Below are positions 1,275-40,326 of a DNA stretch of 64,000 nucleotides, one piece after another; the stretch's first letter is position 1; each line of letters begins with the position of its first letter. Source of the DNA: Rebecca billardiae RCC1528 (lineage: Eukaryota; Protista; Haptophyta); assembly GCA_965240325.2 (NCBI GenBank), contig OZ251228.1:2604001-2668000 (forward strand). Reading direction: 5' to 3'. A model generated the notes under the pieces. The model was not told where the DNA came from and did no database searches. It saw only the letters and a list, made by a program, of their open reading frames with translations. The translations under genes were made by a program, and so were the position numbers.

Positions 1275-3193
1275 GTAGGTCCGCCCCTTGTAGTGCCCGG
1301 GAAAAAGATATTATAAGAAAAAGAAAAAGAAAAAAGAAAATCGCCTCGCAAAGAAAAGATAACCGTAAAGAAGAAATGGTCCGCGGCCGTCCGGCCGTGC
1401 TGCGCAAACGATGTCCTCGCCAGCAGCCCTCTGTCCACCGCAGTGCCGTGCGCGAGTGCCGTGGCCATCCGCAAGGTTCCGGCAACTTCTTAAGATCTCT
1501 GGTTCCGGCATAGGATTAGGAGAAAGTCGAGGTCGGGTACGTGAGTGGCCCATGGCCATGCAAGCGGACCAGCCGGCGTCCTCGTGTGGCGCCACCTGTG
1601 CAGCACGACCGTGTTGGGTCGCATCATAGCTTCCCCTTGGCTGTGCTCGTGCTGGCTAACCTGACTGACGCGCATGCATCATTCGGCTCTGACGTCTGCT
1701 GATAGGATACGCGGTAAACTATACTACGAATATTACGAACTCGCCCTGGTGCCGGCCAGGCGCCGCACTGCGGGCGAGCCAACCGCGCCGTGCACTGGCC
1801 GGTTGGCCCACCGAGTGGCCATACGGCGAGACGTCACCAGGCACCTGACGCACGAGTCGCACGTTAACGTGGTGCGCTCCCTCCGCCTCCCTGCCGATTC
1901 ATACTTGATGCCCGGCGTCACACCTGACACCAGCTCACTGCCCCAACGCCCAGATGTGCGAGGTAATGGAGCCAGGGCTGCCGGCCGGAGCCCATCAAGC
2001 AGGCACGCCTGCGGCTGCTGCAGCCGCAACGTGCTGGCGATGAGACAGGGGACCAAGACCACCCCGTCCGCACCAAGCCATCCGCGATTGTGGTCATCCA
2101 GCCGCCCGAGGAGCCAGCCTCGGGCGAGCAGGAGGCAGACAGCTGCCGCCCGACCACCTGAGCGCGGCACCTGGCAGCACATGCCACACAACGGTGGCGC
2201 AGCTGCCAAGGGCAAGGCAAAGCGGAAGGACGCAATCCTGCGGCCAGCGTCGCAGCGGGCATCCATCCAACCCACACGGGAGGCCCGCAGCCGCCTAGCA
2301 GCCCAGCCCAGCCCGTCACAGACAGTCACAGCATTGGCTCTCGTGCAGCATCCGCACCCTGCGAGCACGGAGAGTTCAGGACGCAACGTAGGGCGGCGCG
2401 CGCGCGGCAGACGAGCCGGGCCGTCACCGCCCGCCTCCACAAGCCGCCCCCGCGCGCGCGGCGCGCACCATCCGCCCCAGAGTGGTAGCGCGCAGCGGCG
2501 CGCGGCCGCGACCCTGGTCGAACCGGGACGCACTGCTCACGCCGTGGCGCGGCGCGACGGGCGCGGCGCGGCGAGGTCGCATGTGCTTCCCCCGGGGGCC
2601 TGATCGTACTGGCTGAGGCCCCCACGCGCGGCGGACTTCGTGCGCGCCCCGCCTGATGTGCGCGGCGCAGCGCGCGCCGGGCTTCCATGGGCCGGTGCCG
2701 GTGCGCCGTGCTGGCAGGCTCGGTCTCGTCAAGCGTTACCCGGCGGCCCCCTTTAGCTTGGTTCTCGACAGCGAGGCCAACCATCGACGCTTGGACGCCT
2801 ACGGCCGCGCCAAGCGACGGCGCCGAGCGGGCGCGCGCGCGCGGCACGAGAGGTAGACTCCCGTAGCGTGCCTCCACACCCCGCCCGCGCCAGCGCACCC
2901 GCTCCCGGCTCTCTTTCCGCTCCGCGGCGGCGCTCGGCACCCGAGCCGAACCGAACGCGTGCACGGCGCACGACGCAGCGCGGCGCGACGGGCGCGGCGC
3001 GGCGCGCTCGGAATTTTCTCGCCCGGGGCTCCGAGCGTACGGGCCGACGCGCCCACGCGCGGCGCGCTCCGCGCGCGCCCCGCCGAATGCGCGGGCAGGC
3101 GTGAGGTGCGGGTCGCCACCCTTACGCGCGGCGGCGCGGCCGTCGCGAGCCACCCGTCCCAGAAAGCCCGTGAGCCCGTCTTCGGCTCAGCGG

Positions 3194-3223
3194 GCTCAAA
3201 ACATTCCATGGAATGTTTTGAGC
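3194..3223. repeat. Perfect 30-bp palindrome within a 13-bp inverted-repeat frame
   Basis: GCTCAAAACATTCCA|TGGAATGTTTTGAGC. It is framed by CCACCCGTCCCAG (3150-3162) and CTGGGACGGGTGG (3308-3320). Confidence 0.9.
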
Positions 3224-5834
3224 TCAGTGATTATGAAATGGGCTGGTAACGAATAGCTGCGGGTATTTTCAAATACCATGGACTGGCGGGAGCCTTGACG
3301 TAGGGGGCTGGGACGGGTGGGGTCCCCGCGCTTGGCGGCGACGAGAAGCGTCCGGACTCTCCTTGATGTTGCACAAAGCCGCGGGGGCGGCACGGTTAAA
3401 TCCGGGCGTGCCCCCCCCGCGGAAAAATCGCCTCGCTCACTGCCGGGTCGCTTCGCTCACTACCGGGCGCCCTCGCAGCTCCCACTGGGGACGCTCGGCC
3501 GAAAAGTGGTTCGCCCATGGCGCGGAGCGCGTGGGCCGCGCGCGCCAAATCCAACGCCGGCGCGGACATCGCGCGGGGATTCCCGAACGGTGTTTTCGCC
3601 CGATTCGCGATTGCTGCCCTCGTCGTCTCGCGTGCAGGTCGAACGGGGGCTAAATCGACCCGTTTGGAGCGGTACGCTCGGCGCGTCGACACGATCGTGC
3701 GACCTGGGGCGATCCTCGCGCGACGTGCACGTCGAAAGCTCGCACCGGCCATATCATCATGCGCTGCGCACGATGGCCGCCTCGCGCGATCCACCGTCGC
3801 GCGTCGGGCTCGGTGCGGAAAGGCCCTCATCACGAGGCGTCTCGCGGGCGGGAAGCGCCATCGCACGCGACGCAAGATATTTTTGGCGCGGCCTTCTGTG
3901 TGGTTGATGGCCGCCCCCTGCCCCCGCGGGCGCGAGGCGGCGGCGCCGCGTGCGTAGGCACGACCCCCGCAGCCTGCGCGGTCACGCATGACGGAGTGGG
4001 GAGACCCTGTCTGCCCACCCTTTCTCCTCCCCGAGCCGCTCGCTCAACCAGCCGCGCTCGCCACTGCGCAGAGCACATCGACAATGCGCACGCGGCCGAC
4101 GCGTTTCGACGACCTTGACTTTGACAAGACCCCACGGCTCGCAGACGGCACGAGGCAGGGCCGGCAGCGCCGTGGAGTACAGTCTGGCCCTCAACATGCT
4201 CCTTCCAGCGCGCAGCCGTGCCCCAACGCGCAGGCGGCGCCCGTGCTGGCGAGACGGCAGCCCTCGGCCAGGCCCACGAACGTGCTCGACGAGTCCATCC
4301 AGTCCATGGGTTGCAGGCTCAGCCCGCTGAGCCTGCGTAATGCCCACCCAGCCGCCCGAAAGGGCCCCATGCCGGCCTACACTGGCCTTAAACGTGTAGC
4401 CCTCACCGGCTTAAAAGGTGTACCGCCCGACTCTCCAGCCCCTGTGCGGCACCATGGGCATGGCACCGCTGGCAGGGACGACTGCTCTGCGCTGCCCATG
4501 CGCGCGCCTACACATCAGCTGCACTGGGTGCGCAGTGGCAGCGTTGTAGGTGCTAGTCCGGGGCAGACAACAGGGAGGCAGGTGGCCTGTGATGCAGGTG
4601 GGCCCGGGGCTGGCCCGAGGGCCCGAGAGCGCCCGACCGCTACCCTCGACGCCGGCGTCCCTGCCCGCGCTACTAGTCTCCGGCGCTCGGGCTGCAGCGG
4701 TAGTGCGAGCTGGCTAGACGAAGATGCGGGTAAGAATGGTAACGGTTGGGTGCGGGTGGGCGCCCGGAATTCGTCCCGAGTGCACCGCCGAAGTGCTGGA
4801 TTACAGGTGAGGTCTCCTCCAGGTGCGGTCAAGGTGAACCGTGAGCCTGATGCACGCACTACAAAATGGGGGAGATACTATTGTCTCGCGACTGAAGCGT
4901 TTGCGGATGGTGGTGACAGCGGTTCGTCTGCCTACGGTTCCTATCGGTTGGGCAAGTCTTGCGGCGAGGCTTGCCGTCCCGCAGGCTTGTCAGAGCAGGA
5001 CGGCGGCTGCTCCAGCGCGGCCCACCGTGACACGCTGCTGCGACGGCAGATGGAGACCCGGCGGCCGCGCGACGTCGATGGCGTGGGCGCGGATGCCAAC
5101 ATGAGTGACGCTGAGGAGAACGACCCGCCACATACTCCGTTGGGTAAACGGCGCCGCGGGGCGCGCGCGCAGCGGGCCGGTGCTGGTGCTTGGGCCAAGA
5201 CGCCTGACGCGGGGGCGCAGGCATCGGCCGAGCCGGGATTGCTGAGCGCGCACGTGCGCGGCGCCAAAGGCAACGCCGTCATTACTCTCCCCGATGACAG
5301 GATGCGAAGGGCGGCAGAGGCGATGGCCGAGGAAACGGGCCGCATGCGGCCGCATGACATGGCCTCCACGGCCGCCGTGCTCGCTGGCGACCAGGCGGCG
5401 GAGAAGGTAAATGCCGAGGTGGGCACTTCGTCTCGCCTCATCGCTTTCGACCACGCTGCCAGGATCGTATGGCTGGCCCACGCTGTGGTGGCAGCACTGC
5501 TGGTGTTGATGCAGATCACACGGATGCCGGCTGCTGGCTGCTTGACTGGGCTGGGCCTGGCCTCCCTGCCCCCCGCAGCGTGGCTGACGTTCACCGTCGT
5601 CGTGCAACCACGGCCAGCACTGGCAGCAGCAGGAGTAATGGCTGAGGTGCTTGTCTGGCTACTGCTGTTGGCACTGCGCAGTCGCCCCGCTTTGCCCCCC
5701 GCCACAGCAGTGGTCGTCTGTGATGATGATTGCTGTGACGTGAAGCTGTCTGCCACGCAGCGCTGCACTGGCACTGCGCGCGGTCGAGAGGAGGCAGCGG
5801 CGGTGCCAGCCCGCCGCTGCCTCCTCTCGACCAG

Positions 5835-21039: not shown

Positions 21040-21139
<100 letters not shown>

Positions 21140-29021: not shown

Positions 29022-29891
29022 CCGGCAGGTCAGCGATCCACTAAAAAACGACAGGTTTCCAGCAAGGGACCAACCGGTCCAGAGGTACCTCAGGATTTGG
29101 GAAACTCGGAAAATGAGAGAAATTCAAAACCCGCCGCGTGCGCCCGCCACAGCCATCCGCCGCGAGGCGCCGCCCGCTGCCGCGCCGCCGCGGTCGTAGA
29201 CGTGCACGCGGCGATGGCGCACGCGGTCGGGCAGAGGCGCAGCACTGTTCTGCGCCGCCCTGCGCCGGGCGACTCGCGTCTGCCCATCTTCTCCGCGCCT
29301 TGAGCCCGCACGGACGTGTGCGCCGCCTCTCGGGCTTCAGCCGGCTGTCATCCCCACAAAATATACGCGCGCTGAGAGCAACCCGAGGCGCGCATCCCAT
29401 GAACGCGTGAGCCATGTTACAGTACGGTCGTAGACGCACGCCATGGTGCCCAGCGGCTTCCCGCGCGTGCGTGCCTCCCTGCTTCCTCGGCAGGCAAGGC
29501 GCCCATGTCTCTGGCTGAATGTGGCGGCGGCGCAAGCTCGCGCTCGCGCGGGCCTCAAGCTGACCTTCGAGGTGCGAGGGCGCAAAGTGCTGCGCCACGC
29601 GCATGCTACAGTAGTTCCCCGCCTCGCTACCGCCCCGCTGCGTCCCATCGGAAGCTCTTCTGGACATCGCGCGGCCTCGCCCTGGCGGCGGTAGGCGCGG
29701 GCGAGGTGGCGGCGGGCTGGCAAATCCCAAGGGAGGTCCGGGCCGGGAGCTCCCAGCGAGCGGCCGGCGCGACGTCACTGCAAAGTTTTCCCTGAGCGCC
29801 GGGCGGCGGCGGCGCGCCAACGGCACAGCGCGAAGGCGGGAGAGCGGAGTTCGTCGTCAGCCCGGGCGGCGCGAGCTCTTCACCTCGCGCG

Positions 29892-32576
29892 ATGGCGAAC
29901 GCCGACGCCGAGCAGCCGGCCGAGCAGCGTGCTGATACGAGTGTAGCTCCTGGCTCGATTCCCCGCACGCTTGCCCAGCTTCGACCGTCGACGGCGAACT
30001 CGCCGCCTCGAACGGGCGCAGGCGACGATGCTGCATGTGTCGAGCAGCCAGACATGTGCGTCGTGGAGCAGGCGATCCGAGGCGAGCTCGACGACGGCTG
30101 GACGCTCCAGAAGTTCGAGCAAGCAGACACTGGCTCCGCTGGGATCCCGAAGGCGATGACCCAGAAGCTCGTCGTCACGCGCATTGCGTTTGCACAGGAG
30201 TCAACGACCTTTGCGGCGGAGGGCATGCCCGCGATCACGCGGTGCTTCACGGTGGACTCGCACGGCCAGCTGCTTATTTGCATCGGCGGTTGCAAGCTGG
30301 GGCCCTCGTTCTTGTGCACATGCAGCACGCGCGATCTCGCCATCCGCGGCGACAACTGCATCTGCATCTCGGGCGCGGTGCAGGACATCGAGGCACGCGC
30401 CAGGGGCCTGCGCTCGGGGGCTATGTCTGACTCGGCGCTCTCGGCAAAGTGGAAGGAGATCACGGTGCTTCTCGTTGGCAGCGAAGTGTGTGCGGGCGTG
30501 CGCAACACCGAGTGGTACCGCAAGGCCGTCGAGGACCCATCGGAGGTGCGCAAACTAAGCGCGCGCGTGTGCGAGCAGTACACGGACGATGGCGCTGTTG
30601 TGCAGTGCTTCAAGTCCCCGCACTGCTCAGCGCTCGTCTTCCGCGGCTCCGGCGTCGGGCAGAAGGCGCACATGCTCAACGGGGCAAGTGTATGCGACCA
30701 GTGCTACAACCTGCGCAATATCCTTCGAAACAGTGCCATCGCCAAGGACACCGCGCGCATCCTCAGCGCGCGGACCGACCTTGGCCGCTGCTCGCGCGGA
30801 GTCGCGTGCGTTCAGCTCGTGCAAAGGCACGATCTCGCCCGCGAGGAGAACGCGGCGCTCAAAGCGGAGATCGCGGCATTGCGGCAGCAGATCGAGCAGA
30901 CCGGCGTGCGCGTCGCCACGGACAATCCGAAGAAGCAGGAGATGCTCGATTTCATGATGACCGAGGTGAAACGCTTTGTGGAGCAGCCGCAGGCAGTCGA
31001 ACTGATGACGTCGCAGGAGTACCGCAAGTACCGCGCGATGAAGGACTTGGAGTACAGCTATCGCCAGGAGCAGGGCACGCTGAGCGGCATGCGCTGGGAC
31101 AACCGCACGTTCGCGCTCGCGTGGAAGGCCACGGTCGACAACCCGTCCGCCGCCGCCGCGCTGCATCAGTCTGGCCTCTTCACGCTGCCCGACTACCGGC
31201 TGATGAAGCGCTACCGCTCGAAGCGCATCGCGCACATCAACGGCAATTCCGATGCCTTCTACTCGGAGCTCGGGGTCCGGACGGCGCACCTGACTGGGCA
31301 GGCTCGGCTCGGCGTGCTGGGCTTCGACGGCATTCACGTCGAGCAGGACGTCATCATGTCCAAGCTCGGCAACGGCGAGCTCGATTGGTGGGGCTCTGTC
31401 TCGCGCTCCGAGCAGGCAGAGAACGGCGGGCAGCTCGCGCTCGCCAGCGAGGCGCTCGTCTTCCTGTTCCAACCGCTGATGGAGAAGAAGAAGAAGAAGG
31501 GCGAGCGCCAGGAGTCGTACGTTGGCGGCGTCTTCCCGGGCTCCTCGTTCGACGCGGGCCGGATCGGCCACTTCGCCGATCAGGTCAAGGGCAACCTCTA
31601 CCTACTGGCGCGTCTCGAGGTGATCGCCCACTCGTGTGATGGCTTGGCGGCCAACCGACTGTACTTCAAGGTGGACACGGAGGGCATGAAGGCCTTCTGC
31701 TCGGGCGCGTACGAGTTCCGCATAGCGTGCGCGTCGAGCGCGATCACGGCTGGCGGCCGGGACGCGTACATCATGGATCCGACGCACAACGAGAAGAAGG
31801 CGGTCAGGTTGGTGATGAGCTCGCGTGTTGGCGGCCGACGATCCATGTACAACCCGCTGCTGGGCGAGTGCGGTTGGATCACGCGCGACACGATCATCCG
31901 TCTCGACAAGTGGCAGACGGACAAGTTGGTCAAGCTGTACCACACGCTGAGCAAGCGGGTGGTCGACTTCGAGAAGCGCGATGCGATGAGCGTGCCAGTC
32001 GCGCGCGCCCTCATGAACGAGGGCTTTCTCGAGACGATCGAGTGGGCGCGCGAGCACGGCTTCACCCACGCGCAGTTCACAGAGGGCTTCGTGGGATTCT
32101 TCAAGACGATGCTCGAGATCCACGAGCCGCTGCGCGGCGGTGGCAAGGGCTTCTCGAGCAGCAAGGACCCGCGGCTGCTGCAGATGATTGACGCCCTCGC
32201 CGCGCTCCAGGAGTGGCACGACAGCTTCGCCACAGCCAAGGCGCGCGCGCGCGGCTTCTTGTCGTCGCAGTTCTGGGCTGACCTGCACTACATGGTGCAC
32301 GGCTTCCAGGGGGTCCTCGTCGAGCTCGAGCGTCGATTCGGCGTCGGTGGCTTCGCACCGATCGACCCGACCTCGGCGGCGCAGGACCGGCTCGAGCGGC
32401 TCTTTGGGCAGGCGCGCGCGCTCAAGCAGGGTGGGCAGATCAACGTCTTTGACTTGATGTGCGGCATCCAGACGATCGTCGAGGACCAGCGCGCTGTCAA
32501 CGCGCAGTTCTCTTTGTGCGGGAAGCGCAGTCGTGAGAAGGGCAACTGCGGTGACGACATGACTAAGGACGGCTGA
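29892..32576 (+). CDS. P-element-type transposase (894 aa)
   Basis: Coiled coil, then GMRW, LPDYR, VLGFDGIHV (D), HSCDGLAANR (D), MDPTHNEK (DxxH), AMSV and QDRLERLFGQAR (E). The Cys-rich N-terminus has no canonical THAP motif. Confidence 0.92.
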   Translation: MANADAEQPAEQRADTSVAPGSIPRTLAQLRPSTANSPPRTGAGDDAACVEQPDMCVVEQAIRGELDDGWTLQKFEQADTGSAGIPKAMTQKLVVTRIAFAQESTTFAAEGMPAITRCFTVDSHGQLLICIGGCKLGPSFLCTCSTRDLAIRGDNCICISGAVQDIEARARGLRSGAMSDSALSAKWKEITVLLVGSEVCAGVRNTEWYRKAVEDPSEVRKLSARVCEQYTDDGAVVQCFKSPHCSALVFRGSGVGQKAHMLNGASVCDQCYNLRNILRNSAIAKDTARILSARTDLGRCSRGVACVQLVQRHDLAREENAALKAEIAALRQQIEQTGVRVATDNPKKQEMLDFMMTEVKRFVEQPQAVELMTSQEYRKYRAMKDLEYSYRQEQGTLSGMRWDNRTFALAWKATVDNPSAAAALHQSGLFTLPDYRLMKRYRSKRIAHINGNSDAFYSELGVRTAHLTGQARLGVLGFDGIHVEQDVIMSKLGNGELDWWGSVSRSEQAENGGQLALASEALVFLFQPLMEKKKKKGERQESYVGGVFPGSSFDAGRIGHFADQVKGNLYLLARLEVIAHSCDGLAANRLYFKVDTEGMKAFCSGAYEFRIACASSAITAGGRDAYIMDPTHNEKKAVRLVMSSRVGGRRSMYNPLLGECGWITRDTIIRLDKWQTDKLVKLYHTLSKRVVDFEKRDAMSVPVARALMNEGFLETIEWAREHGFTHAQFTEGFVGFFKTMLEIHEPLRGGGKGFSSSKDPRLLQMIDALAALQEWHDSFATAKARARGFLSSQFWADLHYMVHGFQGVLVELERRFGVGGFAPIDPTSAAQDRLERLFGQARALKQGGQINVFDLMCGIQTIVEDQRAVNAQFSLCGKRSREKGNCGDDMTKDG

Positions 32577-32698
32577 CTCTGATGACGATGATACGATTCT
32601 CGATTCTCTCTATCTTTCTCTCTCGATCATATGCATACGTATATATATCAGCAGCTCGCAAGACGGTAGTAGTGTCGTCACTGACGGCCCCTGCGGCC

Positions 32699-34726
32699 CT
32701 ACGACTCGGCATCCGCATCGCCGCCATCCTCGGCGTCCATCATGCTCGCATCAGAGTCGGTGTCGTCGTCATCGTCACCATCACGCGCCGATCGAGCAGA
32801 GGTGGGGCGCGTTCGCTGCTGCGTCGCCTTGCGGAGCTTCCCACGAAGCGAGCCCTTCAAGCTCTCAAGCGCGGAGCCGCTCGTGCTCGGCTTCTTCTTC
32901 TTCTGAGTCTTCTTCTTCCTCTTGGCCGCAGCCGCGCGCTTGGCCTTGAGCTGCTTCTCACGCGCGTCCTTCAGCTTGCGCGCCACGTACTTGCGGAAGC
33001 TGTTGTAGAAGCTGTTGAGGTACTGGCGCACGTACATGCGCCGCGCGAAGCCAAGAACCTCCGAGCTCTGCCACGATGCACACGCGGTGACCAACTGTCG
33101 CCACTTGCTCGACAGCGCCTGGTCGCAGAGCAGCATGGTCGTGCAGGCCTGCAGCTCGCCAGGCTGGATCAGCACGCCCGCCAGCTTGACGCGAGCGCGC
33201 TCCTCGAGCAGCACACAAAAGTCGACGAGCTCCTGCCGACACCGTGTCAGCTTGACGACGCGAGACCGGTCGACCATGTTGAGCATCTCCGTTTCCGCGT
33301 TGTGCACGTCGGTGCCACGCGTCACCGCACACGCTTTGAAGAACAGAATCAGCTCCTCGCGAGCGCTCCCGCCCTCGCCCTTGTCGAGACGCGCGTCCAC
33401 GGCGAAAAGCGCCCAGCCGCCGACGCGCCGGATCGCGGCGCGGTCGGCGAGGTCGAAGCTCTCGTCGGGATCGAACGCGACGCCGACGGTGCGCTCCAAA
33501 GGTGTGCACTGCCGCCCGAGCACCCGCTCCTCGGCCACCAAAAGCGGGTAATTCGCATCAAAGACCTCGATCTGGCAGCGCAGCACGAGCGCGCACACGA
33601 CGCTCGACCGAATGTTGAACTCGTTGCTGAACTCGACGATTTTCGGCGACTCGGGGGCGAAGTGCTCGCGCACCTCTTGGCGGAAGATAAGGCGGCAGGT
33701 GCGTGACGAGCGACCGTCGCCTTTCATGCCGAGATGCCGCGCGTACGCCCGCGGAAGTAGCTCGAGCAGCATCTGGTTCATGCGCTCGCCGACTGCAGCC
33801 AGATCGACCGATGCCAATTCCGGCGCGGCAGAGGGGAGGCGATCTTCCGTGAGTGGGTTGACGCCCAGCGCCTCCAGCTTCGACTGCCCAATGACGCCCT
33901 CGACGAGTCCGTTGACCACCTCGGCGACCTGGGCGTCGGCCTTCTCCTGCTGCGAGACCCTCAGCTTGCGCTTCTTGGCCGCTGGCGCGCCGGTGGCGAC
34001 CACGGCGGCAGCAGATGGTTGGCCGCCAGCATCAGCGTCGCCGCGCGGCGCGGCTGCCAGCTTGTCGGCGTGCTCGGGCATCCGCGCGCGGGCCTGTGCG
34101 CGCTCAAGAACCGCACGCTTCTGGTCCTCGCTCGCCATCGCGAGGTACGGCGCTCTCGCCTCTTCGTCGAGGGCGTTGTACGCGTCCTGTGCAGCCTTCT
34201 TGTCCTTGATCCAGTGGAACTTCTTCGCGGTGTTGCTCGCGGCGGCAAAGTCCTGTGCGAACTTGGTCTTGATGAAGCAGGTGAGGGCGCTCATCGCGTT
34301 CTTCACGCCCGTCGGCGCGTGCGCTTTCCGCTTCTTCGAGCTCGCCGGAGCCGCCGGAGCGCCCAGGTCTCCGCCGCGAGCCGAGCTGATCGAGCCATCA
34401 GCGTTGGCGTCGCGGGCTGCGGCCGGGACGAGTCCGGGCACGTCGCTCGGCAGGATCTCGGCGAGCGCGTCCGATCGACCAGGACCAGCACGAACACTCT
34501 CGTCGCCACCGCCGCCGCCGACTTCGAGCGCAGCCGCCGCCTCGGGCGCGTCTGCGCCCGGAGGCAGCTCGAGCGATCGCGCAGCTGGCGGCGGCAACGC
34601 AAGCGCCAGGATCTCGGCAGGTACGGCGGGCTTGCCCGTGGGTGCCAGCGGTGTACACGTACTCGCCAGGTGCGTCCGCTCGCTGCTGCCGTCCACGGCT
34701 CGCTCCGTGCCACCTGCGCCGCTCAT
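32699..34726 (-). CDS. Second P-element ORF: HMG-box-like domain plus region resembling the P-transposase C-terminal domain
   Basis: Intact 675-aa ORF inside the TIRs. KNAMSALTCF...YNALDEEARAPYLAMASEDQKR is HMG-like (~34095-34305). Also AIRRVGGWAL, VDRSRVVKLT and a basic tail ending SLRGKLRK. Confidence 0.8.
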   Translation of the reverse strand: MSGAGGTERAVDGSSERTHLASTCTPLAPTGKPAVPAEILALALPPPAARSLELPPGADAPEAAAALEVGGGGGDESVRAGPGRSDALAEILPSDVPGLVPAAARDANADGSISSARGGDLGAPAAPASSKKRKAHAPTGVKNAMSALTCFIKTKFAQDFAAASNTAKKFHWIKDKKAAQDAYNALDEEARAPYLAMASEDQKRAVLERAQARARMPEHADKLAAAPRGDADAGGQPSAAAVVATGAPAAKKRKLRVSQQEKADAQVAEVVNGLVEGVIGQSKLEALGVNPLTEDRLPSAAPELASVDLAAVGERMNQMLLELLPRAYARHLGMKGDGRSSRTCRLIFRQEVREHFAPESPKIVEFSNEFNIRSSVVCALVLRCQIEVFDANYPLLVAEERVLGRQCTPLERTVGVAFDPDESFDLADRAAIRRVGGWALFAVDARLDKGEGGSAREELILFFKACAVTRGTDVHNAETEMLNMVDRSRVVKLTRCRQELVDFCVLLEERARVKLAGVLIQPGELQACTTMLLCDQALSSKWRQLVTACASWQSSEVLGFARRMYVRQYLNSFYNSFRKYVARKLKDAREKQLKAKRAAAAKRKKKTQKKKKPSTSGSALESLKGSLRGKLRKATQQRTRPTSARSARDGDDDDDTDSDASMMDAEDGGDADAES

Positions 34727-35384
34727 CGCGCGACGAGCGCGGCGCGCGTCCGACGGTCGGGGTCCGCCTTCGCGCTGTGCCGTTGGCGCGCCGCCGCCGC
34801 CCGGCGCTCAGGGAAAACTTTGCAGTGACGTCGCGCCGGCCGCTCGCTGGGAGCTCCCGGCCCGGACCTCCCTTGCAAATCCCGAGGTCTGGACCGGTTG
34901 GAATGCCGGCGAATTCATCGCCAAGGCAATTTGGGCACGCGCCAGCCGTCCGCGATTTGCGCACCGCACAAGCTGGCCGGCATAAAGACTGGCCGATGTG
35001 GCGACGCTCCCATAGCTTTTTCTGACGGCCCGAGGTACGAGTGGTCGTTGGCCGCAAAACTACACGAAAATAAACATTTTGCTGCGTTTGCGGAAATGGC
35101 GACGCTCCCGGCCGCTCTGCCGCTGACTTCGCCCGCTGGCAGGCGCAGTGGGAGCCGACCACTCGTACCTTCGGGCGTCAGACAGGAGGTCGTGTACCGC
35201 CCGCGCGCCGCGGACTCGCACGGCGCGGAGAGGCCGCTCCAGGGGGCGACAGCCGCTTGGGCGCGGTCCACCTTGACGCCCTCGAGGGGCCCACAGCGCC
35301 GAACGCCCCTGCACGCTTCACCTCGCCGCGCGCGAGCGCGTTCAAAACGGCCTCCATCCTGAGGTCCATCCGCGGCCAGTCTTT

Positions 35385-36986
35385 ATGGTCGACGTGAGGA
35401 GCCCCAAGTGTGATCACGCCGGCTGCACCAAGGTGCCTTACTTCGGCATGCCGGGCGACGCGCGCGCCAGCCGGTGCGCTACGCACAAGCTGGCAGGCAT
35501 GGTCGACGTGAAGAACCCCAAATGTGATCACGCCGGCTGCACCACGCAGCCTTACTTCGGCATGCCGGGCGACGCGCGCGCCAGCCGGTGTGCTACGCAC
35601 AAGCTGGCCGGCATGGTCGACGTGAGGAGCCCCAAGTGTGATCACGCCGGCTGCACCACGCAGCCTTACTTCGGCATGCCGGGCGACGCGCGCGCCAGCC
35701 GGTGCGCTACGCACAAGCTGGCAGGCATGGTCGACGTGAAGAACCCCAAATGTGATCACGCCGGCTGCAGCACGCAGCCTTACTTCGGCATGCCGGGCGA
35801 CGCGCGCGCCAGCCGGTGTGCTACGCACAAGCTGGCCGGCATGGTCGACGTGAGGAGCCCCAAGTGTGATCACGCTGGCTGCACCAAGGTGCCTTACTTT
35901 GGCATGCCGGGCGACGCGCGCGCCAGCCGGTGTGCTACGCACAAGCTGGCCGGCATGGTCGACGTGAGGAGCCCCAAGTGTGATCACACCGGCTGCACCA
36001 CGCAGCCTTACTTCGGCATGCCGGGCGACGCGCGCGCCAGCCGGTGCGCCCCGCACAAGCTGGCCGGCATGGTCGACGTGAAGAGCCCCACGTGCGATCA
36101 CGCGGGCTGCGCCAAGCGGCCTTCATTCGGCATGCCGGGTGATTCGTGCGCCAGCCGGTGCGCTACGCACAAGCTGGCCAGCATGGTCAACGTGGTGAGC
36201 CGCAAGTGTGATCACACCGGCTGCACCAAGGTGCCTTCCTTCGGCATGCCGGGCGAGCGGCGCGCCAGCCGGTGCGCTGAGCACAAGCTGGCCGGCATGG
36301 TCGACCTGAATATTCGCATCAAGTGTGATCACACCGGCTGCACCAAGGGGCCTTCGTTCGGCATGCCAGGCGACGCGCGCGCCAGCCGGTGCGCTACGCA
36401 CAAGCTGGCCGGCATGGTCGACGTGGTGAGCCGCAAGTGTGATCACACCGGCTGCACCAAGGTGCCTTCCTTCGGCATGCCGGGCGAGCGGCGCGCCAGC
36501 CGGTGCGCTGAGCACAAGCTGGCCAGCATGGTCGACCTGAATAATCGCATCAAGTGTGATCACACCGGCTGCACCAAGGGGCCTTCGTTCGGCATGCCAG
36601 GCGACGCGCGCGCCAGCCGGTGCGCTACGCACAAGCTGGCCGGCATGGTCGACGTGGTGAGCCGCAAGTGTGATCACGCCGGCTGCACCAAGGTGCCTTC
36701 CTTCGGCATGCCGGGTGATTCGCGCGCCAGCCGGTGCGCTGAGCACAAGCTGGCAGGCATGGTCGACGTGAAGAACCCCAAATGTGATCACGCTGGCTAC
36801 ACCACGCAGCCTTCATTCGGCATGCCGGGCGACGCGCGCGCCAGCCGGTGCGCTGAGCACAAGCTGGCCGGCATGGTCGACGTGGTGAGCCGCAAGTGTG
36901 ATCACGCCGGCTGCACCAAGGTGCCTTCCTTCGGCATGCCGGGTGATTCGCGCGCCAGCCGGTGCGCTGAGCACAAGCTGGCAGGC
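35385..36986 (+). repeat. Coding minisatellite with 114/117-bp unit
   Basis: Near-identical nucleotide units, with a higher-order dimer (units 8-9 nearly equal 10-11). Confidence 0.97.
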
Positions 36987-37445
36987 ATGGTATGCAGTCG
37001 GCTCGCCGTCCCCAAGCGCAGGCTGGAGCATGGCACCGGTGACCAGGGCACGCGCGCCGCGGAGCGACGGCACAAACATAGCAGCCACATTGCCGCCGTT
37101 TCGGACGTCGCGCCTCGGCTATCGCCACCACCGCCACTGGTCGCAGTCGGCATGCCACTGGCAGCAGGCAGCATCGTCCGCTGGAGCTCGCCAGATGGCA
37201 CGAGCTATTCGGTTGGCGACGGGGTGGTCAACGGTGGTGCCCTGGGCCTGGGCGAGCAGCATCTGTCTGGCAACGCAGGTGACGCAACCCGGGCTGCCGC
37301 TGGCTGGTCTGGCATCTACGACCAGGGAGTCCAGGGACTACCAGCAGGCATCATCAACACCACACCGCTGCGCCAGGACTACCATCATCATCGATGGCGG
37401 CGGGAGCACGACAGCAGCAACCGCCGCAGGTCATGCCTGTGGTGA
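35385..37445 (+). CDS. EsV-1-7-type Cys/His repeat protein with 14 tandem repeats
   Basis: 14 units of 38-39 aa with C-x4-C...FG...C-x2-H-K..GMVDV at 35385-36986. The C-terminus homologous to the paralogue lies in another frame ending at 37648, so this copy may be frameshifted or spliced. Confidence 0.85.
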   Translation: MVDVRSPKCDHAGCTKVPYFGMPGDARASRCATHKLAGMVDVKNPKCDHAGCTTQPYFGMPGDARASRCATHKLAGMVDVRSPKCDHAGCTTQPYFGMPGDARASRCATHKLAGMVDVKNPKCDHAGCSTQPYFGMPGDARASRCATHKLAGMVDVRSPKCDHAGCTKVPYFGMPGDARASRCATHKLAGMVDVRSPKCDHTGCTTQPYFGMPGDARASRCAPHKLAGMVDVKSPTCDHAGCAKRPSFGMPGDSCASRCATHKLASMVNVVSRKCDHTGCTKVPSFGMPGERRASRCAEHKLAGMVDLNIRIKCDHTGCTKGPSFGMPGDARASRCATHKLAGMVDVVSRKCDHTGCTKVPSFGMPGERRASRCAEHKLASMVDLNNRIKCDHTGCTKGPSFGMPGDARASRCATHKLAGMVDVVSRKCDHAGCTKVPSFGMPGDSRASRCAEHKLAGMVDVKNPKCDHAGYTTQPSFGMPGDARASRCAEHKLAGMVDVVSRKCDHAGCTKVPSFGMPGDSRASRCAEHKLAGMVCSRLAVPKRRLEHGTGDQGTRAAERRHKHSSHIAAVSDVAPRLSPPPPLVAVGMPLAAGSIVRWSSPDGTSYSVGDGVVNGGALGLGEQHLSGNAGDATRAAAGWSGIYDQGVQGLPAGIINTTPLRQDYHHHRWRREHDSSNRRRSCLW

Positions 37446-37911
37446 TGGCGAGCAGGGCCCTGGTCGATGCTGGCGGCTCAGAAGCGCGTCACACTCACAG
37501 CTTCGGTCCCGGAGTCTCGACGCTCGAGAGAGGCAACGACGGTGCGGGTTGCCTCGGAACAGTGCTGCCACCACACGGTGACACAGAAACTGAATCTGAC
37601 GACCGTTGGACCGTGCTGTCTTACGATCTGTCGTCAGATGAGTCGTAAATGTAATTGGCTCCAGCTCCGGTAGAGCCCCCTACGGCTACTAAGCTCCGTT
37701 ACGTCGTCAATTAATGGCCCGCGCCTGGCGTCGGACTCGGGACTGGCCCTGAGCCGAACGGTCCGAACCCGCGAAGTCCGGGACCATGGGCACTATGATG
37801 CAGCCGACTGCCGAGTGACCCCCTCGGCCCTCCGAGTCCGACCCCTGATGACATTGGCGATTGATGATACTACTTCAACGACGACGAGAAATGGGCCCGT
37901 AGTATGGGTCA

Positions 37912-38072
<161 letters not shown>

Positions 38073-38199: not shown

Positions 38200-38201
38200 T
38201 A

Positions 38202-38294
<93 letters not shown>
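38200..38294. repeat. (ATCT)n + (AT)n compound microsatellite
   Basis: Seen directly in the sequence. Confidence 0.98.
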
Positions 38295-38297
<3 letters not shown>

Positions 38298-39232
38298 CGA
38301 CGTGGTATGCAACGGACAGGCGTCAGAGTCAGCAAGCAATGTAGCAGCAGATCGAGCAGCAGAGACAAACACCAGCAGGATGTATATATGATGCGAATAA
38401 AATGACGCCCGGCCTGGGTATAGTTAAAAAAGAAAATAGAGTCTGAACCTATTGGAGGTTTGGCTGATGATGATCCATCTGGCCGTCATTTCGATTTTCG
38501 TCCAAGGGACCGCCTGGGTTGGTCTAGGACTAGTTATAGGGGCGATTGTAGATCATCAGGGGCGGCGATCCCGCCGATCTCCATGTCAAGATGTAACGCT
38601 CCAGTGACCGGACTTAGGGGGTTCAACCGAAGCAGGAGCCAGCAATTACCCATCGTGCGTCTCTAATTATTCTGTTCGTTAGTCGTAGCAGTATTGAACG
38701 ATGTCAGCAGCAGTAATCAGGCCGAAGGGGCCCGAAGGCGGCGAGCCGTGAGTCTACTGAGTCATCTACAGTACTAATAAACTAAGAAATCGTGGGCCTG
38801 CTAACTATAAACTAAGTTACGTCGCGGCTCGTGTCGGTCCAACCAAGGCGCGTGCCCGTGGGAGGCGCGGCGCGCCGGCCCGACTACGAGTAAGCTACAG
38901 GCCAAGTCCACTTCTCCTGTAACTGAGTCCGCTGGCCAACGGACAACGGTGCCACCTGGCACATCCATGCAACTATCGTCGTCAATCAAGCCAGATTTGC
39001 TCCAAAAGGCCCAAACTTTTCTTCGGACTCAGCGGGGGGCTCTGCGGCCCTACCCCCCCCCCCCCCCCCCCCCCCCCCGCGCGCGCGCGCCTTAATGCGC
39101 GGCGGGCGGCCCTAGCTAAAAAAACTGACACTCCATAGGCGCTCGCCGGATGAAGTTAGCAGCGTGCGAGGAGGAGGCGCGGCGCGTGTCCGCAGCTGGC
39201 GAGAGGCGTCCGGACCGTGACGTTATCGGCCC

Positions 39233-40326
39233 CAAGGGTGTCCAGGGTCCGCAACTCGCAGTGCGCAGCGCGGCAGAGGCTGTGTCATCGCAAGGTCGCC
39301 GCTCGCCAGTGGGACTCGCCCGCCCGCCGCCGTGCACGGCGGCGGGGCCGCTCGCGCCGTGCGCTCCTGCGGCCGTCGGGTCGGGCTGCGGAGGCGGCGC
39401 GGGGCTTCGGCCGTAGCAGAGCCACCCGGCACCCCTCGCTGCGCCGCGCGCCTTCCTCGTCCTCGCCTCCTCCGCGCCTTGAAGCAGCACGCACACGCGC
39501 GGCGCCGCACAAGCGCAGCGCAGGCGCTCGCGTGCAAGCGCGCGCGCGCAGCGCGCGCCGGGCTCGACTCGGGGCTCGAGCCGCTGCGGGGGCATGCAGT
39601 ACCATCGCCTACGCGCGCGACACCACCTCGAGCCTGCGCATCGATGTGCTGGTCACGCGCCAAATGCTCACAGGTCCTCGTGTTAATGTAGGCGCAGCCT
39701 GACCAGAAGCTGCTGCATGCGTCTGGACGATTTCTTAGGCAAGGCACGATCACAGCCACGCTCATGGCGCTTCTCAGCAAGTGTACACATCCCACGAGAA
39801 GAGCCCGCAAGCGTGAAAGCCTCCGCATCGATCGCATCTGCGCACTCAAAGCCTGTTGTTCATGCTTCACGCGCACGTGTGATGATGCCAGGTCAGAGCA
39901 TTTTGTATCGTGCATCAGCGTGCACTGCCGGTCAAACGGGTAGGCTCGAGGTGGCGTCGAGCGCGCAGGCGATGGTACTGCATGCCTCCGCAGCGGCTCG
40001 AGCCCCGAGTCGAGCCCGTCGCGCGCTGCGCGCGCGCGCTTGCACGCGAGCGCCTGCGCTGCGTTTGAGCAGCGCCGCGCGTGTGCGTGCTGCTTCAAGG
40101 CACGGAGGAGGCGAGGACGAGGAAGGCGCGCGGCGCAGCGAGGGGCGCCGGGTGGCTCTGCCACGGCTGAAGCCCCGCGCCGCCTCCGCAGCCCGACCCG
40201 ACGGCCGCAGGAGCGCACGGCGCGAGCGGCCCCGCCGCCGTGCACGGCGGCGGGCGGGCGAGTGCTCACCACTGGCGAGCGGCGATGCGCACTGCGCTGG
40301 CGAGTTGCGAGGCACGGACACCCTTG
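39233..40326. mobile_element. Older foldback element with CAAGGG termini (P/Galileo-like)
   Basis: Termini CAAGGGTGTCC and GGACACCCTTG. Inverted arms ~39233-39635 and 39942-40326 carry scattered mismatches and indels. The flanks share CGGCCC (degenerate TSD). Confidence 0.85.

Follow-up and report, generated by a model that had tools for sequence, protein, structure and literature searches.

Does an array of almost identical Cys/His units in a haptophyte genome hold a recognition code, and if so, which ligand would such a code read? The question is raised by a coding minisatellite of 14 EsV-1-7 units located at 35385-36986 (plus strand) of the window, that is, the whole stretch of 64,000 nucleotides from Rebecca billardiae RCC1528 (contig OZ251228.1) that was analysed here. 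An original prediction, made from the DNA letters, had described a zinc-finger array with an almost fixed scaffold and a possible PRDM9- or TALE-like code. The window locus is an ordinary, probably damaged member of the known EsV-1-7 family. On the reading favoured here, to which we give an even chance, this family consists of shuffled arrays in which a few hot-spot positions would set binding specificity, the ligand being most likely DNA.

The array and its variable positions

The region 35385-36991 is the sole array called by Tandem Repeats Finder (114-bp period, 14.0 copies, 88% matches, score 2379), and the array is contained in an open frame of 686 codons on the plus strand (35385-37445). 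Unit boundaries were set by cutting the translation at each Met. In the resulting unit table, 12 of the 14 units are 38 amino acids long and units 9 and 11 have 39 (117 bp instead of 114 bp), with the pattern M-x7-C-x4-C-x16-C-x2-H-x4. Identification as an EsV-1-7 repeat was borne out by Pfam, where PF19114 (EsV-1-7) matched the array in 14 stretches (E 3.3e-198, 641.6 bits for a cut-off of 25); no other Pfam family reached its cut-off on the array protein. The C-x4-C-x16-C-x2-H spacing is kept in every unit but unit 13, in which the second zinc-ligand Cys is replaced by Tyr (TAC, 36798-36800, plus strand, from the unit table), and unit 7 has an Arg-to-Cys change. Each 38-residue unit presumably binds one zinc through a Cys3His set, judging from the invariant ligands only. 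The array is basic (pI 9.2; 80 K+R for 46 D+E). Two minus-strand open reading frames (ORFs) across it, of 307 and 222 amino acids, were rejected as genes: PF19114 sets the coding strand, so they are considered as artefacts of the repeats.

Every variant block named in the original prediction was found in the units, namely TKVPY, TTQPY, STQPY, AKRPS, TKVPS, TKGPS and TTQPS after the second Cys, RSP, KNP, KSP, VSR, NIRI and NNRI in the linker, and DAR/DSC/ERR/DSR and ATH/APH/AEH at the remaining two sites; TKVPN and TTVPA, attributed to a paralogue, were found at 63774-63965 on the minus strand. The almost fixed scaffold with few variable places was confirmed and holds family-wide, but the restriction of changes to four places was not, amino-acid variation being present in 18 of the 39 codon columns (synonymous variants in 11). 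A minimum spanning tree connecting the 14 units gave 38 codon events that are non-synonymous and 22 that are synonymous, and 25 of the former fell in 8 columns, a concentration beyond uniform (p 0.003).

For family-wide comparisons, unit positions were counted from the first Cys (Cys1 = 1), so that position 9 is the third residue after the second Cys (Cys2), and 47 arrays (window and 50 loci) supplied a sample of 419 distinct canonical units. Entropy was highest at positions 9, 35, 36, 37, 11 and 25, followed by 38, 33, 34, 4 and 18, and the entropy profile of the window array was correlated with that of the rest of the family (Spearman rho 0.79, p 3e-9). Ratios of non-synonymous to synonymous change (pN/pS) were obtained from changes along the 351 minimum-spanning-tree edges no longer than 10 nt, scaled by the global pS of 0.069. 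They exceeded 1 at seven positions: 3.56 at position 9 (bootstrap 3.02-4.15) and, at six more, 1.92 (position 35), 1.69 (position 11), 1.59 (position 4), 1.57 (position 36), 1.54 (position 25) and 1.35 (position 37), for a value of 0.36 in the remaining positions pooled as scaffold. Entropy and rate ratios per position across genomic copies are both in line with the uneven variation that had been predicted.

Codons at position 9 are nearly all NNG, and 88% of units have one of five residues there (Q, R, G, V or W); P, L, E, K and T, though each is one nucleotide change away, seldom occur. Compared with the average third position, the first and second positions of this codon change about 5 times as often. 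CpG hypermutability was considered as a source of this turnover and rejected, CpG transitions being 36 of 194 nucleotide changes. Within-protein variability was also computed in 66 EsV-1-7 proteins of other organisms, each with at least 5 canonical units. It peaks at positions 9, 11, 36, 35 and 25, and its profile is correlated with the haptophyte one (rho 0.69, p 2e-6). Since the same positions vary most in the EsV-1-7 proteins of other organisms, the hot spots are, on this comparison of sequences, a property of the domain and not of the window array.

The array itself is a two-unit higher-order repeat, with a mean difference between units of 8.4 nt at lag 2 and 13.8 nt at lag 1. Units 1-2 are 98.2% identical to units 3-4, units 8-9 are 98.7% identical to units 10-11, and unit 12 equals unit 14. 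From this likeness at lag 2 and these near-identical blocks, about eight independent units lie behind the 14, multiplied via recent dimer duplications of the kind left by unequal crossing-over. A mosaic is seen in unit 13: markers shared with units 2 and 4, among them a synonymous AAA, occupy its 5' half, and a GAG found in units 8, 10, 12 and 14 its 3' part. Family-wide, 36% of units have their nearest unit within their own array, where chance would give 2%. Units of the window array nevertheless have twins only 2-5 nt off (of 114) in arrays on other contigs (e.g. L058), whereas the tails of the genes holding these near-twins are merely about 75% identical to that of the window (70-82% range). 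Units are thus much more similar than the genes that carry them, which indicates unit transfer or gene conversion among arrays. The predicted reshuffling of variant blocks between units is supported by these two-unit duplications, by the unit 13 mosaic and by the near-twins in diverged paralogues.

Several of these observations weigh against a role of the hot spots in specificity. The 22 synonymous events of the window array are clustered as well; merely eight or so independent units underlie the 14; most site omegas are of 1.3-1.9; and the rates were derived from recombining units on an approximate tree, at a third-position GC content (GC3) of 0.85, a codon bias which could depress pS. A two-fold error in pS would be survivable for position 9 only. 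These points favour the alternative that there is no code, the variable residues being unconstrained loop or linker residues and the window copy, with its transposon insertion, frameshift and lost Cys (see below), a neutrally drifting pseudogene. The pattern would then result from purifying selection on the scaffold, gene-conversion homogenisation and block duplication of a few old variants. Position 9 argues otherwise, since it changes 3.6 times faster than synonymous sites without CpG effects as an explanation, and since its spectrum, limited to five main residues, is non-neutral; in addition, the same positions are the most variable ones in unrelated hosts and viruses. We consider the absence of a code as unlikely.

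The family, its viral relatives and the putative ligand

A six-frame search with PF19114 in the 72-Mb assembly (41 contigs) returned at least 2,267 first-look candidate units, and all 150 candidates that were scored lay far above the cut-off, in arrays across many contigs. An intronless HSP90 of this genome shows 87% identity to a Chrysochromulina protein, 83% to Diacronema lutheri and 88% to Emiliania huxleyi, which places the host among the haptophytes. On the contig of the window, a loose EsV-1-7 cluster surrounds the array, reaching about 66 kb upstream and about 230 kb downstream, and array-plus-tail paralogues sit in local tandem clusters. Their layout is a half-unit (..PPGDARASRCA.HKLAG) followed directly by MVDV, 4-18 units and then a tail. 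These tails have a basic patch and a proline-rich stretch, and belong to several classes, some with an acidic end run; the basic patch and acidic end were recognised by eye, the tail being without family match. Within the window, whose GC content is about 67%, the end of a neighbouring paralogue (L031) occupies 63438-64000 on the minus strand, with its last two units and a short acidic-ended tail; this gene runs past the window edge and has 8-9 units in all. A second coding minisatellite was observed in some paralogue tails, i.e. L042 (G000:C30:517865-518758) and L044 (G000:C7:3479492-3479893), with a 123-bp unit of about 41 residues (EHGTGDQ..SPPPPLVAV) repeated 4-8 times.

In database searches, the best relatives of the array protein reach only 45-59% identity. 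Their sources are metagenomes, a dinoflagellate, green algae, Nannochloropsis, and brown algae or their sisters. Neighbours in the ESM Atlas are PF19114 clusters, chiefly of Nucleocytoviricota. Additional Pfam names on database relatives (Zf_WRKY19, DUF2769, Rieske and others) were discarded as sub-threshold overlaps on the repeats.

In viruses, the arrays were found joined to a further domain. A giant-virus contig of IMG/VR encodes a 414-residue protein with six PF19114 repeats followed by a C-terminal domain of 170 residues, which was found at 19 viral loci; 7 of the 10 distinct viral ORFs with this domain that were scanned have 5-7 PF19114 repeats in front of it. The domain has no match in Pfam, NCBIfam or PHROGs; fold comparison gave middling scores, but the hit list was uniformly PD-(D/E)XK, with a Vsr-like fold. 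The viral arrays are 38-43% identical to the window array, and the combination of array and nuclease hints at a targeting module followed by a cleavage module in these distant relatives. Family searches in the tail of the window protein detected no Vsr/PD-(D/E)XK-like domain, which is present in the viral relatives only. Two adjacent EsV-1-7 genes lie at 1889-4245 of the AT-rich IMG/VR giant-virus contig L041, one of them array-only (205 amino acids, 5 repeats) and the other (414 amino acids) with an array, a Cys4 knuckle and the Vsr-like nuclease fold.

The array is thus a coding minisatellite: unequal crossing-over of blocks of one or two units lengthens and shortens it, units also pass between it and the arrays of other loci, and its scaffold remains almost fixed. 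A few positions are replaced faster than synonymous sites, foremost position 9 (mostly Q, R, G, V or W), along with the fifth residue after Cys2, the residue between the third Cys and the His, and the linker before Cys1. On the favoured reading, these hot-spot positions would set the binding specificity, each unit being one element of a composite surface. Reading of nucleic acids by the array is plausible, and DNA is proposed as the most likely ligand because giant-virus relatives put the same arrays before a Vsr-like nuclease fold. A search of the PDB with the unit profile gave nothing meaningful, and an AlphaFold2 model of units 1-3, computed from a 78-row in-register alignment, was unusable, with a predicted local distance difference test (pLDDT) of 45.7 and a predicted template-modelling score (pTM) of 0.23.

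The arrays may instead be scaffolds for proteins or RNA, with hot spots that would result from an arms race with viral or transposon proteins or from RNA recognition of the PPR/PUF type. A fixed repeat scaffold under diversifying selection is just as characteristic of repeats that bind proteins, the family is strongly tied to Nucleocytoviricota, and, as a further point against DNA as the ligand, family searches detected no nuclease or other DNA-related domain in the algal proteins. The coupling of viral arrays to a Vsr-like nuclease fold, a layout typical of DNA-targeting enzymes, argues in the opposite direction, as do the strongly basic array and the basic patch of the tail, which is similar to a nuclear localisation signal by composition only. 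Protein- or RNA-binding scaffolds are considered as unlikely.

DNA binding may also be taken one step further, in a proposal that we hold tentatively and rate as possible at best: EsV-1-7 units would form a modular DNA-recognition system with one target element per unit, read mainly via position 9 (Q/R/G/V/W) and assisted by four or five further fixed positions. Minisatellite shuffling would supply algae with hundreds of diversified readers of this kind, and in giant viruses the same arrays would direct a Vsr-like nuclease. The uniform scaffold, the hot spots common to other hosts and viruses and the viral coupling to a nuclease make the DNA-reader hypothesis directly testable. If true, it would provide a new programmable binding scaffold and explain why the EsV-1-7 family is common to giant viruses and algal hosts. 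The domain defines the largest brown-algal orthogroup as well as the developmental regulator IMM, and the window locus shows how EsV-1-7 arrays evolve, through dimer duplication and unit exchange between loci.

State of this copy and neighbouring elements

The array is followed in the same frame by a non-repeat tail (36987-37445, plus strand), which was compared with the tails of more than 25 paralogues and includes PKRR and RRHKH as a basic patch. It has paralogous copies with 70-82% DNA identity, at least 50 in number, and no match in Pfam, NCBIfam or PHROGs. A DNA alignment with the C21 paralogue and a three-frame read revealed a 2-nt surplus at 37356-37370 (plus strand) that shifts the frame of the tail: ..GLPAGIINTT is read in the family frame upstream of the surplus, and AAPGLPSSSMAAGA.. 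in another frame downstream. All of the more than 25 paralogues compared hold one frame through ..INTTAAP.LPSSSMAAGA... The window protein stops (TGA) at 37445 after 27 off-frame residues unrelated to the family. The acidic C-terminus that the family conserves (..ESDDRWTV..SSDES stop) was recovered from the ORF list at 37394-37648 (plus strand); it is readable in the shifted frame only and matches the C-termini of C21, C7, C18 and L031.

Upstream, a miniature inverted-repeat transposable element (MITE) of 401 bp (34984-35384), with 12-bp terminal inverted repeats (AAAGACTGGCCG) and AT/AT flanks inside cATg, lies exactly between the ..KLAG of a half-unit and the Met of unit 1. At least 40 copies of it exist elsewhere, three of them at 100% identity. 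In all 9 copies examined the element is preceded by ..AT and followed by ATg, the left side being cAT in 8 and aAT in one. In-silico removal of the MITE and one AT gives ..KLAG-MVDV.., a normal unit junction. As excision restores the junction, the ATG at 35385 is, as far as this reconstruction goes, the own Met codon of the unit, which may or may not be the start.

Some further features of this MITE were recorded. Its flanks read ATGGC.. (start-codon-like) in 7 of the 9 copies, and in 2 of the 9 (the window locus and C5:3514884-3515291) it stands directly before the first Met of an EsV-1-7 array. Putative splice sites (GT at 34998, AG to 35379) would leave 19 nt which, with the duplicated AT, make 21 nt, in frame. 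In its interior (35030-35180), CCGAGGTACGAGTGGTCG and its complement form an inverted repeat of about 18 bp with a spacing of about 100 bp, and GGCGACGCTCCC occurs as a direct repeat.

The half-unit before the MITE (..CAPHKLAG, 34925-34981, plus strand) is degenerate, its last 26 nt being unit-like and the rest diverged with indels, and the 108-bp piece that holds it (34876-34983) has a single occurrence in the genome. Inserted 50 bp upstream of the half-unit is a P-like transposon (29728-34875); its terminal inverted repeats are perfect over 112 bp, and its target duplication reads CAAATCC. A third repeat element of about 645 bp (29070-29716; at least 40 copies, about 91% identity) ends 11 bp before it. 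No upstream exon or promoter of the array gene could be reconstructed from the flank, because the latter consists of nested transposons and the unique 108-bp remnant.

Given the MITE at the ATG, the transposons upstream, the lost Cys of unit 13 and the tail frameshift, the window copy is probably a recently damaged or dying member of the family. Advanced decay is argued against by the scaffold, which has 0.38 deviations per unit for a family mean of 0.91 (22 positions), and it is possible that an alternative start, natural variation among tail classes or an assembly error mimics damage.

With three elements within 6 kb upstream and a foldback-type element 1.5 kb downstream, the array could itself be taken for transposon cargo or for transposon-encoded, as the original prediction had allowed. 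Inverted ends and a target duplication of its own, however, delimit each of these elements, and none of them includes the array. The 108 bp separating the two upstream elements are genome-unique, and identity is 91-100% among transposon copies but 70-82% among array-plus-tail paralogues, which are organised in local tandem clusters. This origin is regarded as highly improbable. Judging from the window locus, the arrays are frequent landing sites for transposons.

The downstream element is a high-copy repeat of about 368 bp, present at 39116-39600 (minus strand) and about 39717-40100 (plus strand). Its 296 first-look candidates (93-95% identity) include inverted pairs about 375 bp apart, an arrangement that suggests a foldback-type element. 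Other EsV-1-7 arrays (L031, L049) also have copies right before them, which can pass for an N-terminal ORF extension. The peptide ..ASCGPWTP.. found before some paralogues was examined as a shared 5' exon and rejected, being an arm of this element. AT/TA dinucleotide microsatellites of 46-85 units, perfect or near-perfect, are located at 37915-38070, 38200-38294, 21044-21136 and 52154-52323; the first two form a pair just downstream of the array gene, amid 67% GC sequence.

Comparison with known systems

PRDM9/KRAB arrays are similar to the window array in being coding minisatellites of zinc modules whose units turn over by unequal recombination and in which omega exceeds 1 at few residues. 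Their units are C2H2 modules of 28 residues, whereas those of the window are C-x4-C-x16-C-x2-H modules of 38 residues; they have more than 95% unit identity and a SET or KRAB domain, for 88% and neither domain in the window. Membership of the PRDM9 group is not supported by Pfam (no C2H2, SET or KRAB), and the likeness is only in the mode of evolution.

The repeats of transcription activator-like (TAL) effectors (TALEs) share with the window family near-identical units of 34-38 residues with hypervariable fixed positions. TAL effectors have, after the repeats, a nuclear localisation signal and an acidic activation domain; the paralogue tails show, by eye and with no family match, a basic patch and in some cases an acidic end, which is out of frame in the window copy. 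TAL repeats are nevertheless helical hairpins of 33-35 residues with one di-residue (12-13), whereas the window has Cys/His units of 38-39 residues, and EsV-1-7 units have six or more separate hot-spot positions, unlike the single di-residue of TAL. With no TAL repeat hit in Pfam, Cys/His units and several hot spots, the array does not belong to the TALEs. Vsr-like homing endonucleases (I-Bth0305I) have the same targeting-then-cleavage layout as the viral EsV-1-7 fusions; the window protein differs from these fusions by the absence of a nuclease domain.

The known system to which the locus belongs is the EsV-1-7 family itself. Its motif was described as a possible novel zinc finger, and 31-335 EsV-1-7 genes are counted per genome in brown algae or their sisters, where they show tandem clustering, include the developmental regulator IMM and have a probable viral origin (bioRxiv 10.1101/2024.02.19.579948; bioRxiv 10.64898/2026.04.27.720984). 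In the EsV-1-7 literature searched, no position-specific hypervariability, code, haptophytes or nuclease fusion is described. The brown-algal and viral proteins (EsV-1-7, IMMEDIATE UPRIGHT) are like the window protein in motif, spacing, tandem repeats and the lack of any other Pfam domain, and also in having tandem gene clusters and a link to giant viruses. By comparison with brown-algal EsV-1-7, the window locus is distinguished by its haptophyte host, a scaffold that is far more uniform, a conserved tail of its own and a family of at least 2,267 candidate units.
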